Of a DNA stretch of 64,000 nucleotides, positions 9,698 through 15,727 are shown piece after piece (within the stretch, counting starts at the first letter, position 1; every line of letters starts with the position of its first letter). Below the pieces are notes generated by a model. It was not told the origin of the DNA. It was given only the letters and a program-made list of their open reading frames with translations, and did no database searches. The translations under genes and the position numbers were made by a program. The DNA is from Utricularia gibba (Eukaryota > Plantae > Magnoliophyta). Location of the stretch: NCBI GenBank assembly GCA_002189035.1, contig CM007989.1, positions 7,874,001 through 7,938,000 of the forward strand, read 5' to 3'.

Positions 9698-12600
9698 TCA
9701 GAGAGCAGACTCGATTTTGTCATGGAGCGTGACGACCAGGTCGTGGGCATCGTCCAGGAGCTTCCACACGTCAAGATGCCCCGCCATTGAGTTGCACTCC
9801 CTCAGGATCTCATCCATGCTGCTGTACTTCTCGATGATCAGCTTCCTCCTTTGCAGGACGGACGCCGCGATCGCATACAGCAGCAGGTCGTCCGTCGGCG
9901 GCGCCCGCTGCCGTATCTTCCTCCAGGCCTTCTTCCCTATCCCGGCCCTGATGGCAGCCTGGTCAGCCCACATCACCTCCCACAGGCACAGGGTCTGCTC
10001 GAAGGTGAGCTCCCGCCGGAAGAGGACCACCACCATCCGGTACACAAAGAAGCAGTCATTGGCTTGGAGTTTCTCCAGGTGCTTGTAGAGGCGCAGGTCC
10101 TTGTACTTGATGATCTTGGAGACGATCATCAGCTGCCTTCTGATGCCGACCTCGTCGAGCCTGAAGTTGTAGCGAGCCTTTTTCATGAACCCAACGAAGC
10201 ACCAGAAGGCTAAGCTGTCATCGGTCATCACAGCGATTATGGGAGACAGGAGGTCGCTCATCCCCTGGCAGTAGCCGATCTCGGGGTCATACCGAGCATA
10301 TGCTTCCAGAATGACAACCAGTCGAGCAGCATGGAAGATCCTGGCGGGATCAAGGTGTTCACAGTCATTCAATCCAGCAATCTCAGACGCGTGCTTCGCC
10401 TCGATGTCTGACACCGTGTTCTGGACTGGGAGTATGGCATCCATTCGGCATTGCACCGGATGGCATCGAGTCGGATGATACGCTGCCATGTAGAAAAATC
10501 TTCTAGACCTTGGGATGCTGGCTTGATTTCCGTCGGCAGGGATGATGATGAGAGCTCATTTAGGGATGGCTCGAGATCAACCGAGGAATCAGTGTCCAAG
10601 GAATCTGAGTCACAGCCATCTATCAATGAACTGGTGGGTTGGTTAGCAACCTCGTCATTACTGACCCCAAACTCACTGGAGAGAGATTCCCTGGTGCTAA
10701 CAGTATCACCGGAATCTGGACAACCCACAACAGAAGAGGAACTCCCATCAACAAACTTGGTACTTTCACCACCTCCATTCATCTTGGCCACTTTACTGCT
10801 AAGCTTAAGAAGCTGGCTACACGGCCTCCATAATCTCTCATATTCTTTCCTGCGTGCATTTTTATCATAATGAGTATGAGGAACGCATGAGACGCCAGTC
10901 AATTAAACATATAAAGAATAAAGGAATGAAAAAATACGTTTTTAAATAAAACAAACAAAACATCCTTTGCCTCGGTTATCCTGTTTCTCGACTGGTGTGT
11001 GATCCAGGAAGGGGTAAAGGAAGTGACCTGAAGAACAAAAAGTGATAAGGGTACGTAGTGCACCTTTTCTGATTAAAAATAGCATCCCTTTCTTCACTGG
11101 TGCTTGTAAGGTCGTATCTACAAATAAGTGAAAAAATAAAGTTAGATCCAGAGCATGGAAGTTACTCGGAACAGATACTCAAAATGAAAGGTAAATGCAC
11201 CAAGAATACGGTAAATGAGTGACAAGTATTGAAAAGTTCCGATTTTGTGTCTTTCATTCACTATCTATGGTCGACTGAACATGCCAGTTAACTAAACGCA
11301 ACCACCATCTAAATAAATATGCGTATCCCGGAAATACTAAGTTGCATGACTGGGGCGCGGCGCAAGTAGCAATGAATCAACTTACACGCCAAGGAGGAAT
11401 GGCCAAACCTCTGCTCTTATACTCGGATCAACACTCTGCACACACCAGCACAAAATCGTACACATCATGATCATCACATCCAAACCCAAATAACAGCATT
11501 TTCACCGAGAGGAGTCATATAAGATATGAGTAACAGGAAAATCACAAGTTCAAGCCATGTGAAACAACTCACCCCACTACGCACAATCTTCAAAAATTCA
11601 ATTCCATCGTCAATGAGTTTGCCTTCTGGTGTAAAAGAACTTTTCCATTGACTCGAAGATAAGAGGCACTTCCTTTTTCTTCGTGACCATCGCGATTTGT
11701 GCTGAACTCTGGAACGGGAAACTATTAGTAACAGATTCAATGAAGGCCGCACTTCTTCAAACCAAAGCAAAACTGAGCAGACGGCATTTTAAAAGTAAAA
11801 TTAGCAATCAACAGGAAATCCTTAAATGAAGAGATAAACTATCTCATTAGCTTATGCGCTAAGAATGTAGGGAAATGAATGATGGGCTTTTCTTTTTGAG
11901 AAATGAAAAAACGGACTAAGCAGATGATTTAATATGACAGTTACAAAAAACAGATCGAGATAGATGTACAGCAGCTGCCTCACAAAAAGAGGAACCAAAG
12001 AACACCAAAATGAACCATGACTTGATCGAAGTAAGACTAGGAAAAAATTCCTGCTTTGTCCCACTTCTAAAAAAGTTTCCCCTCAGGGAAGATTTACTCA
12101 AGCCTAAAAAATACCCTACTTCGTCCTTTCTAAAAAGGTGAACTAGGCGACCTGGAAACGGTAAGAAACCTAAAATATCAGAGAAACAGATCTAGATGCA
12201 CAAACAGCGGATTTCGAACGGAATACGCTGAAGTGTTAGAGAGAGATCTGAAGTAAAATTGGGAGTGGGAGGAAACCAATAATAGAATAAGAAGTAAATC
12301 GAACGATATTTAGAGATAACAGAGACTCACCGGCGGGAAGAAGAAGAAGATGATGATGATGATGAAGAAGCCGGTGAGGAGTTTGTGGATGCTACTAATT
12401 TAATCCACGACAGAGGTGGAGGAGACGACGGCTTATGCGAGGAAGATGAAATTGGCGAAGGTTTTGGCGACGACGACGAAGTATGGCTTCGTCTTAGAGC
12501 TCTCATCTACAACAGTCGCTTCTAATTTTCCTCAGCCAGACAAACTACTCCACTCCACCGAGGTTTCAACACCAGTCGGCAAAAATCCTCGTTTACCTAG

Positions 12601-12745
12601 TCGCGTAGACGACGGCGACGGCCACAACCAGTCCAGCAACGACAGTTAGAGCGATCCTAGAACCGCGATTCGCCGTCTCCCCTATCCAGAAACCCCCGGC
12701 GCCAGCGCCGATGCGGCCGATGGACTCAATCACCGAGGAGAGCAT
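9698..12745 (-). CDS. TBC-domain Rab GTPase-activating protein (Gyp/TBC1D15-like) with two candidate first exons (12745-12597 and 12506-12331)
   Basis: Motifs KFLKIVRSG, WQRIIRLDAIR, LEAYARYDPEIGYCQGMSDLLSP and YRMVVVLFRRELTFEQTLCLWEV. Common exon 2 starts at 11708 in phase 2. One missing base at 10423-10424 joins ORFs 10369-10902 and 9698-10489. Confidence 0.92.
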
Positions 12746-13463
12746 GGGACGGAGTTCTGGAATGATGAATTCAAAACCGGAAAGCTGCAGCAACGCCGGC
12801 ACTGGATTATTAACCACCAACCAACACACGACTTTGTCCCCCCGCCCTCCTTCCTCATTCACTTCCTCACGACGCCATTATTGGCGTCTGTATATTTCTA
12901 TTTCACTTTTTTTCACGCCCATCGGGTTTTAGGGCATGATTTGGGATGACGGTTTCCCAGAAACATTCTATACGGCGTCGTCTTATGCCCAGATCCTTTT
13001 TTTCCCATTGGAAAGAAAAATGATATATTTTAATATTTTTTCGTTTTTTTAACTTAATTTATTCTCATTTTTTAGCATTATATTTTTAAAATGATTTAAT
13101 TACAGTCATTAATTACTTAAATACTTGATTAGGTTCCATTTAGGTCACTTAACTCTTCCTTTAAGATCCTCTGCTTTGCTGTGCCCCACTTCACAGTGAA
13201 TTGAAGAGCTCACCGGAACAGTGTAAACTCTTGAGCTCCCCACGGCCACAATACGCCGACGGAAATTGGGGTGCAGCTCGGCTTCCGAGTGCCGCTTGTC
13301 GTCATTTTGGGTTATTGGTAATATTTTTTATGTTAATATACAATTCTTGGCAAGCTTTTCATGCCTTATAGATTGGTTCGCCTGTTAAAAACGGTGGAAA
13401 CTTCAGTTGATTTTGCATGCAATGCTTCGAAGGTGAGGTTTTTTGCTCTTTTTTATTCAGTGG

Positions 13464-15727
13464 ATGGCGGTGGTTTTACGCGAAAGAGATTCCGAGGAAT
13501 GGGCGTACAGGGGAGAAGGAGCCGTGAATTTGGTTCTTGCTTATTGTGGGAAAAATCCAAACTTTGTAGGTCTTTTCTTGTTTGGTAGTTGCTTTGTTAC
13601 AAACTGCAAATGCTCTTTTTTGAGTCTATTCCATCATAGCAATTATGTAAGTAGAGAAAAGATGCTTGCTGGCGTTTCTGAAAACTAGTTCTCAGTAGTG
13701 TTGTTTGCTATGGGAAGAACTTTTGATTTTAAAAAAAGTTTACTTTTGGCTAAATGTATGTTAAATTTTGGTGATAGCTTGCGACTGTAAGTTGCTTGTG
13801 TAGTTTCTGGTTCTCTTTATGCCAACTCGCTGATCCCTTCGTTTTTCTTTCATCTGAGTGGATTTAGGTTGGAAAGGTTTTAAGGATACAGAAAGTTGCC
13901 ACTAATGGATCTGCGTGTGACAGCAACCGCCTACCTCTGATCGATGAAGAATGTCTCATTTGGCGAGATTTTGAAGGCATTGTCACTGCTTCTACTAGGG
14001 AAACTGCTGAGCAACTGTATGTGCAAAAAGTGATGTGCCCCTTGTTGGGTCCAGAGCATGTTGATGCAGGGGTGGGTAATTGAACTTGCCTGTTTTGTTA
14101 TTCTGAAATAATGCCATACATAACTCTCTCAGTTTATGTAGTCCTACTGTTTGATGAGAAGTTTCTTCATCATTTACCTATTATTAATATCACATTTATC
14201 CCGTACAGATCAATATTCTCGTGTCAAAGGAATTTTTGGAAGCTGTTGAAAGGAAAGTCCTTTTCCAGCGTCCCTCTTGGCGAGTTGATGCTGCCAAAGT
14301 CAACTTACTGTCCAATTCAGCTCTTCTAATTTCTGATCATTCAATTTTTCCTCATGGTAGGGGCTAGCTCTTCTAATTTCCGCTAACTCATAATATCCGT
14401 GACTCCAGAATTGATTTTACACATAGGCGGTTCTTATTTCTTTGAATTCATTTTTTTTCTTGTTTTATATGTGGCTGAATCAAGGTGGCCCCTTGTATGA
14501 CAAAAGTCCTGTGTTCAGTTTCAGGTATTTTCACGGAAGACTTTTGTGTATCTGTAGAAATAAAGGTGCTTGCAAGTCCGTGATCCATATATTTATTTTT
14601 CTTTCTACATTCTCTTGCTGATCATTTCCTGTGTATCGTATTATGATGCCCTTCATTACAAATCCTCTCTATGCAGCCCAAAGCTGGCATTCTACCGTAT
14701 TCCGAATACATAACTGAACGAAATGCCATCAAGAAGACCACTACCCGTTTTAAAATGCACCAAGTGTTGAAGATGGCGGAAGGGAAGGTACTTTGTAACT
14801 CTGCCTTATTCTACGTCTTGACTAAAGTGATTCCTGGATACCCTCTTTAGTGAACATTTATTCCAGTAATGTAAAACTGTATTGATACAGATTTCGCAGT
14901 TGAGTAACTATGATCCGCTCGACATGTTCTCTGGATCAAAGGAGAGAATACGAAATGCTGCGGCATCCCTCTTTCTCACCCCTCAGAACAACCTTCGGGT
15001 TTTCTTAAATGGTTCTCTTATTTTTGGAGGAATGGATGGGACCAAGAGTGCAAGCTTTACTGTTGACGAAGCATTTCAAAACGGTCTTCAACATGTCATC
15101 TTAGCCAAACATGGATTTCACACTGATTATCTCCTGGAACTTATTTCTGAAGCTCTTTTCAAGTCTGGCTTACTGAATCGGCTTCTTGAGGTGCAGAAGC
15201 TTGATGCTTTTGATGTTGAAGGTGCCATTCACGCCTACTATGATATAGTTTCTGAGCCATGTGCTGTCTGCCTGGAAAAAGCTCAGATCACATCATCAGG
15301 AAGATACTCTACCCTCCACTCAATGCCACTCGAAAAGAAGGTAAAAATCGTGAGGGATTACTTGATATCTGCTACTGCAAAGGATCTCAGCATGATGATC
15401 AGTTTTCGGCCAAGAGCCACGCTGAATACAGAATCCCCGTCATATGATGCCGTTTCTCTGGAACCCACCAATCAAACTTTTGATTACAAGGTGAGCATCC
15501 GCCTTTCTCAGTATGAAGATATGCATTTATACACTGTCTCATGTAGTCAGACTTTGTAGATATCATTCATTGATCTGGATATGAAGCCTCTAAGGAAAAT
15601 GGAATACTACTATGAGCTTGACCAGAAGATAGTGAAATGCTATACCCAGATGGCTAACAGCAAGCAGCATGACAGGGGGGATGCTGTCCAGGACTCACCG
15701 CATTCTTCCACACCAACCTGTATGTAA
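13464..15727 (+). CDS. IPK1: Inositol-pentakisphosphate 2-kinase, 7 exons
   Basis: Motifs WAYRGEGAVNLVLAY, SVEIK|PKAG, YDPLDMFSGS, PQNNLRVFLNG, DYLISATAKDLSMMISF and FIDLDMKPLRKMEYYYELDQKI; all splice phases are consistent. Confidence 0.95.

Follow-up and report, generated by a model that had tools for sequence, protein, structure and literature searches.

RabGAPs inactivate Rab GTPases at particular membranes, and the location of the GAP decides what is regulated. In TBC1D20/Gyp8, the RabGAP catalytic domain is held on the membrane by a single hydrophobic helix, an anchor which is C-terminal and constitutive. The gene described here lies in a 64,000-nucleotide stretch of the Utricularia gibba genome (contig CM007989.1, positions 7,874,001 to 7,938,000; the window) and differs from TBC1D20/Gyp8 in that its predicted anchor would be N-terminal and optional, depending on the choice of a splice donor; no homology between the anchors is claimed.

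The closest described relatives belong to the plant RabGAP22 group (Arabidopsis At5g53570, At3g49350, At5g24390 and At5g41940; tomato SlRabGAP22), which has the same TBC domain, short exons 2 to 4 and serine-rich first exon as the window gene, and in which many database models carry an anchor-type N-terminus. The window copy differs from the group in having a GTG at the ancestral start of the anchor exon and a one-base frame break. The group is associated with pathogen defence, stomatal immunity and salt tolerance, and the functional studies consulted treat a single soluble protein. The forms tested were localized to the nucleus, the peroxisome or the plasma membrane (PMC3913773; PMC6770026; PMC11606415), and neither an anchor isoform nor splice variants are mentioned in Roos 2014 (PMC3913773), in the tomato family survey (PMC6770026) or in the work on editing of the SlRabGAP22 uORFs (PMC11606415). 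The latter reported that uORFs in the SlRabGAP22 leader repress translation, with the anchor ORF not identified there (PMC11606415). Our literature searches for a conserved-peptide uORF (CPuORF) linked to a RabGAP of this group, or for a transmembrane or anchor isoform, found nothing specific apart from these generic SlRabGAP22 uORFs.

Comparison with other plant loci indicates that the window gene, a member of the RabGAP22 group, probably keeps an angiosperm-wide arrangement, in which two, perhaps three, different N-termini would be produced by choosing between two phase-2 donors in the first exon.

Gene model on the minus strand

The gene model was searched exon by exon, with isoform lengths obtained by arithmetic from the exons. 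It describes a TBC/RabGAP gene of the RabGAP22 group with five exons on the minus strand, from 12745 to 9698 (Table 1). Plant RabGAP proteins show 81-85% identity to it, with Lamiales orthologues as the best matches (about 85%). A match to the Pfam profile PF00566 (E=4e-31) falls in the C-terminal part of exon 5, and both catalytic motifs are present: the Arg finger IRLDAIR (IxxDxxR) and the Gln finger YCQGM (YxQ). The GC content is 0.375 in intron 1 versus 0.48-0.63 in the exons.

The acceptor AG of exon 2 occupies positions 11710-11709, leaving 11708 as the first exon base. A first, sequence-only reading of this DNA had proposed two candidate first exons, both ending in phase-2 donors that fit this one acceptor, and every coordinate it gave is correct on the minus strand. 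Joining either exon A or exon B to exon 2 places an Arg before the reading frame of exon 2, whose N-terminal stretch is basic (Ser-Arg-Arg-Lys-Arg-Lys). The exon B peptide begins with Met-Arg-Ala-Leu-Arg-Arg-Ser, conforms to the pattern of the group (Met-Arg-Ala-Leu-Arg-Arg-Ser ... Trp-Ile-x-Leu) and has homologues at the N-termini of about 53-60 annotated proteins.

Upstream, an inositol-pentakisphosphate 2-kinase gene starts near 13443 on the plus strand, and the two genes diverge from a short AT-rich intergenic region. The idea that exon A could be the final exon of a tail-anchored gene lying upstream was discarded in view of this divergent, plus-strand neighbour.

Table 1. Features of the RabGAP locus, in window coordinates
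Feature	Position	Strand	Details and evidence
GTG, ancestral start position of the anchor exon	12815..12817	minus	opposite the ATG of Paulownia L012 in the DNA alignment
Exon A, coding part	12597..12745	minus	ATG 12745; 49 codons + 2 nt; sequence, translation
Distal donor AG/GTAAAC, phase 2	12591..12598	minus	TAA 12595-12593 doubles as the stop of the exon A ORF
Exon A-exon B spacer	12502..12596	minus	candidate 95-nt mini-intron, GT...ATGAG, in frame
Exon B, coding part, serine-rich N-terminus	12331..12506	minus	ATG 12506; phase-2 donor CG/GTGAGT; sequence, translation
Intron 1 with the proximal donor	11709..12330	minus	sequence; GC 0.375
Intron 1 with the distal donor (12597/12596)	11709-12596	minus	sequence
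Exon 2, common to both N-termini	11573..11708	minus	sequence, translation; tblastn matches in orthologous loci
Exon 3	11386..11435	minus	Val-Asp-Pro-Ser-Ile-Arg-Ala-Glu-Val-Trp-Pro-Phe-Leu-Leu-Gly
Exon 4	11064..11117	minus	boundaries from sequence, in agreement with homologues
Exon 5, TBC/RabGAP domain	9698..10849	minus	PF00566; stop TGA 9700-9698
Frame break, one base missing in a C-run	10427..10432	minus	homologue alignments, translations

The exon A peptide and its conservation

Exon A encodes a Gly-rich stretch, a GGFW motif, a hydrophobic helix of about 19 residues and a C-terminal Tyr-Ala-Thr-Arg. The best 19-residue Kyte-Doolittle mean is 2.49 (residues 31-49), in line with the transmembrane-like segment of the sequence-only reading, and after the helix come Arg and the basic stretch that opens exon 2. 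That reading had left out the in-frame TAA of exon A itself. Since this TAA sits inside the GTAA of the donor, the exon A ORF is closed without any splicing, and the unspliced exon is a 50-codon upstream ORF.

With only 50 codons, and since chance can produce a single hydrophobic stretch, exon A might be a fortuitous ORF in a GC-rich promoter or leader. We built a profile from 48 annotated anchor-type N-termini, leaving the window out, and of the 2039 stop-to-stop segments in the window exon A ranked first (E=9.6e-10; runner-up 0.083). Its GC3 of 0.70 is similar to that of exon 5 (0.80), against a GC of 0.29-0.38 in the flanking non-coding DNA, and eight other plant loci have an equivalent ORF at this position. 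The profile match and the coding-type codon-position pattern described below lead us to reject a chance origin, to which we grant practically no probability. Searches with the peptide alone were less productive: an exact look-up of the 50 residues in the contig collection gave no match, and a HMMER search gave only four matches, all to non-plant repeat proteins, the query being too short and diverged. A Pfam match of exon A to Vma12 (E=0.0099) fell below the cut-off and was treated as chance.

A tblastn comparison of the exon A peptide with an orthologous plant locus (L002) located a small ORF about 100 nt before the serine-rich start of that gene, with a near-identical helix and the same AGG-TAA-AC end. 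A profile made from these two sequences recovered five further anchor ORFs in other plant contigs. A small ORF upstream of the serine-rich start, always ending in AGG-TAA-A, is found in L002 and L004-L009; the anchor ORF precedes the serine-rich exon in the same orientation in L002, L004-L008, L010, L011 and L012; and exon 2 was seen after the intron in those profile-recovered contigs that are long enough (L004-L006). Taken globally, eight other plant loci, including those of cacao, pear and Paulownia, share the layout of the window: anchor ORF, AG/GTAAA, a spacer of 86-218 nt, serine-rich exon, intron and exon 2. The sequence-only reading had made its proposal depend on the conservation of the exon A peptide and its phase in orthologous loci, and both are conserved, with AG/GTAAA invariant in all eight of the other loci examined (L002, L004 and L007-L012). 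Two further loci were less informative, as L001 begins inside the serine run and the Punica locus (L003) shows no upstream exons within 10 kb.

In a protein-guided alignment of six loci, codon differences at the first, second and third positions number 132, 40 and 181, and those in the helix core are nearly all synonymous; the guidance by protein matters here, as indels of one or two codons make an ungapped, stop-anchored comparison misleading. The predominance of third-position changes, together with the almost exclusively synonymous ones in the helix core, indicates that the exon A peptide is under purifying selection. The window exon A has diverged further than its counterparts in other species, with 39% identity to L002.

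Paulownia (L012), also in the Lamiales, shows the same layout as the window. In the DNA alignment of the two, the gaps within exon A measure 3, 9 and 30 nt, all multiples of three, a pattern that does not continue beyond the donor. The 23 bases surrounding the ATG of the serine-rich exon show no difference, the segment TAGATGAGAGCTCTAAGACGAAG in the region of the spacer and serine-rich start is likewise identical in Paulownia, and TAGGTAAA is common to both. The start ATG of the Paulownia anchor exon aligns with a GTG in the window, from which we conclude that the window exon has lost its ancestral start. An open frame, which extends from 12877, contains both this GTG and, 24 codons further on, ATG 12745. 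No AUG is present at the ancestral position, while the conserved internal Met at 12745 is kept. An anchor form of the window protein would thus have to begin at this Met, with a shorter extracytosolic tail. The context of this ATG is weak, with C at both -3 and +4.

Anchor and serine-rich N-termini among homologues

The N-termini were compared in 119 plant proteins, obtained by searching with the exon 2-4 region of a homologue and keeping full-length proteins within a length range. An earlier homologue search had returned only matches of up to 427 residues, with uninformative N-termini. In about 48 of the 119 models the anchor leads straight into exon 2; about 53-60 have the serine-rich segment and 5 have both in frame. 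Both types, which the sequence-only reading had placed among plant homologues, are thereby seen to be common there. In the anchor class, which makes up some 40% of the annotated homologues, a conserved single-helix anchor replaces the serine-rich head; many of these database models come from automatic pipelines, and some may reflect a choice made in prediction and not a transcript that was observed. The class includes RefSeq isoform pairs, with anchor-type RefSeq isoforms in cacao, durian, jujube, oak, walnut, squash, mango, persimmon and morning glory, and extends to two monocots (Phoenix, the date palm, and Canna) and two Lamiales (Paulownia and Striga).

The sequence-only reading had also asked whether the two exons sit in one locus in other angiosperms or are split between paralogues. 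The isoforms of cacao and the eight loci with the window layout place them in one locus. In Theobroma cacao, the N-termini of the NCBI isoforms X1 (anchor type, 605 aa) and X2 (serine type, 562 aa) map to a single locus, 130 nt apart and with exon 2 in common. The arrangement is that of the window: an anchor exon ending in AG/GTAAA, the 130-nt spacer, a serine-rich exon with the donor CG/GTGAGT, an intron and the common exon 2. It differs in that the cacao anchor exon has 105 codons, with an extra N-terminal hydrophobic, signal-like stretch absent from the window and from other Lamiales, and in that the serine-rich ORF starts eight codons further upstream than that of the window. In squash, isoforms of both types have identical downstream sequence and lie on the same chromosome. 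Three Logan contigs also code for the anchor type: they are 2157, 2310 and 1790 nt long, and their proteins have 559, 595 and 558 residues. As introns would not fit into these lengths, we read the contigs as spliced transcripts with the junction between the anchor exon and exon 2.

The profile match of exon A, the layout shared by eight loci, the cacao isoforms and the Logan junctions all support, by homology, the core idea of one locus with anchor and serine-rich first coding segments and a common exon 2 acceptor, as the sequence-only reading had proposed. A dual N-terminus is already present in the public annotation of many flowering plants, and the window, judged by its gene structure, is a further case. 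For the window itself, the main outcome is a correct gene model that includes an alternative donor. To the RabGAP22 field, the finding that the same loci encode both heads in palms, cacao and Lamiales offers a testable lead.

A third form could arise by joining exon A to exon B. The interval from 12596 to 12507 is, as the sequence-only reading described it, 90 nt long, begins with GT, ends in TGTAG and abuts the exon B ATG. Its removal would yield AGA-TGA, a stop, and exon A had been seen on this basis as a uORF overlapping the exon B start. The uORF itself stands, as a closed 50-codon ORF, but the overlapping stop created by the 90-nt intron is unneeded with the TAA of the exon already present, and the proposed acceptor is not conserved, L002 having no AG directly before the ATG. 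In the models of pear and apple, the anchor exon is instead spliced to ATGAG/A, five bases further on and in frame; pear isoform X3 uses this acceptor, and its product consists of the anchor followed by the serine-rich region. The same ATGAG/A acceptor is present in the window at 12503-12502, where a join at 12502/12501 would preserve the frame through both segments, matching the pear and apple annotation. An in-frame mini-intron of 95 nt is therefore possible in the window.

A proposed donor choice and the exon 5 frame break

In the mechanism we propose, the two phase-2 donors of one first exon would compete for the exon 2 acceptor. Use of the proximal donor (12331/12330) would give the serine-rich, presumably soluble protein; in a leader starting upstream of 12745, the anchor ORF would then act as a closed 50-codon uORF, and the weak context of its AUG would allow leaky scanning. 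A uORF-limited translation of the soluble form is plausible. Use of the distal donor (12597/12596) would remove the serine-rich segment and fuse the Gly-rich tail and one hydrophobic helix to exon 2. The resulting anchor form would be a single-pass protein with its TBC domain facing the cytosol, as predicted by the positive-inside rule from the basic residues after the helix. We infer from the conserved anatomy that such a switch may operate in Utricularia gibba.

Exon A resembles plant CPuORFs in that it corresponds to a peptide-conserved ORF lying 86-218 nt upstream of the main ORF, in the same orientation, in monocots and eudicots. Moreover, the peptide is conserved in distant species under purifying selection, as in that class. 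It differs from plant CPuORFs in that annotation also treats exon A as a first coding exon, joined by splicing to the gene body, and in that its conserved part is a hydrophobic helix and not a known stalling motif. One could propose that in this species exon A is only a conserved-peptide uORF, or a small tail-anchored micro-protein, damping the serine-rich RabGAP and never spliced to exon 2. Such a role would fit an ORF closed without splicing, the selection on its peptide, the strong termination context of a UAA followed by A, the variation between species of the base after GTAAA, and the experimental repression of translation by the SlRabGAP22 leader uORFs of tomato (PMC11606415). However, dozens of homologous models, RefSeq pairs and intron-free contigs included, join the anchor to exon 2; AGG is invariably the final Arg codon, consistent with a donor constraint; and donor, phase and acceptor are intact in the window. 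We consider an exclusive uORF role unlikely.

A broader version of the donor-choice mechanism combines both roles. The anchor exon would be older than the monocot-eudicot split and have a dual use: through the distal donor it would produce an uncharacterised single-pass membrane RabGAP, and through the proximal donor it would become a long leader uORF throttling the soluble form. We advance this only tentatively. If true, a single donor choice would determine where the GAP sits as well as its dose, and could account for the conflicting localisations reported for RabGAP22 proteins.

The reading frame through the TBC domain is interrupted in the window assembly. Exon 5 shifts frame after Tyr-Ser at CCC, where homologues need four C and read Tyr-Ser-Pro, and the summed coding length of 1565 equals 2 mod 3, one short of a multiple of three. 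The break falls between the Arg finger IRLDAIR, in the frame before it, and the Gln finger YCQGM, in the frame after it. If real, it would leave every isoform non-functional, and the gene might be a decaying pseudogene with an anchor exon that lacks its ancestral AUG and a two-headed layout persisting as a relic. The position of the missing base between the two catalytic motifs, the change from ATG to GTG at 12817 and the failure to find a protein identical to the window RabGAP in the large protein collection searched would agree with decay, which we nevertheless hold to be improbable. Apart from the single base of the C-run, all exons are open and all splice sites intact, and the gaps of exon A relative to Paulownia preserve the frame. 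Homologue alignments switch frame at the break with no residue lost, and the 244 codons that follow it contain no stop and are 85% identical to Lamiales orthologues. The missing base is most likely an assembly error.

Start codons and topology of the two N-termini

Where the anchor exon ancestrally had its start codon, an ATG in Paulownia, the window reads GTG, and the frame from this GTG stays open across 24 codons until it reaches a conserved internal Met (12745). For the serine form, most species (plant loci L002, L004, L007 and L008, and the Theobroma cacao locus L010) carry an in-frame ATG 8 or 9 codons 5' of Met-Arg-Ala-Leu-Arg-Arg; in-frame stops stand there in the window, so that its serine form begins at 12506.

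In many eudicots the anchor exon encodes an additional N-terminal hydrophobic, signal-peptide-like stretch as well as a conserved Trp-Ile-x-Phe-Ala-Glu motif (L010 4001-4130; protein models P0206, P0218, P0248, P0125 and P0127). The window anchor exon, in contrast, has neither the stretch nor the motif, and the same holds for the Paulownia and Striga models. On these sequence comparisons, anchor topology may therefore differ between paralogue lineages.

Connections between the two heads

The spacer that separates the anchor ORF from the serine-rich ATG has diverged between the window and Paulownia, apart from a conserved block of 14 nt (window, CTGGTGTTGAAACC; Paulownia locus L012, CAGGTGTTGTAACC at ~1808-1821). 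This block may have a role in regulation or splicing.

Pear and apple models present a third isoform (P0211, P0227, P0228 and P0231; Pyrus communis locus L011, 1501-1745), in which a 100-nt mini-intron links the anchor exon to the serine-rich exon at ATGAG|A. This join is in frame, thus placing both heads in one protein.

Exon 5 frame and flanking genes

A C-run in RabGAP exon 5 is one base short, at a position between the Arg-finger and Gln-finger motifs, and the 244 codons 3' of it are intact. The missing base is probably an assembly error; if real, it would yield a truncated RabGAP protein.

The RabGAP gene and a neighbouring inositol-pentakisphosphate 2-kinase gene are divergently transcribed from a common intergenic region of only ~700 nt with an AT-rich core. 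On the other side lies a tRNA-like gene, to which ARAGORN assigns an irregular four-base anticodon (ccca); the gene may represent a tRNA-Gly(CCC) that carries a further single-base anomaly.

Features of the RabGAP locus and its surroundings (window coordinates)
Feature	Position	Strand	Evidence or location
Inositol-pentakisphosphate 2-kinase gene	13443-15559	plus	PF06090, E=1.4e-44 on one exon
AT-rich intergenic core	13000-13130		
GTG at ancestral anchor-exon start	12815-12817	minus	
Conserved spacer block	12562-12575	minus	
Short C-run	10427-10432	minus	
tRNA-like gene	9365-9434	minus	ARAGORN; ~260 nt 3' of RabGAP stop
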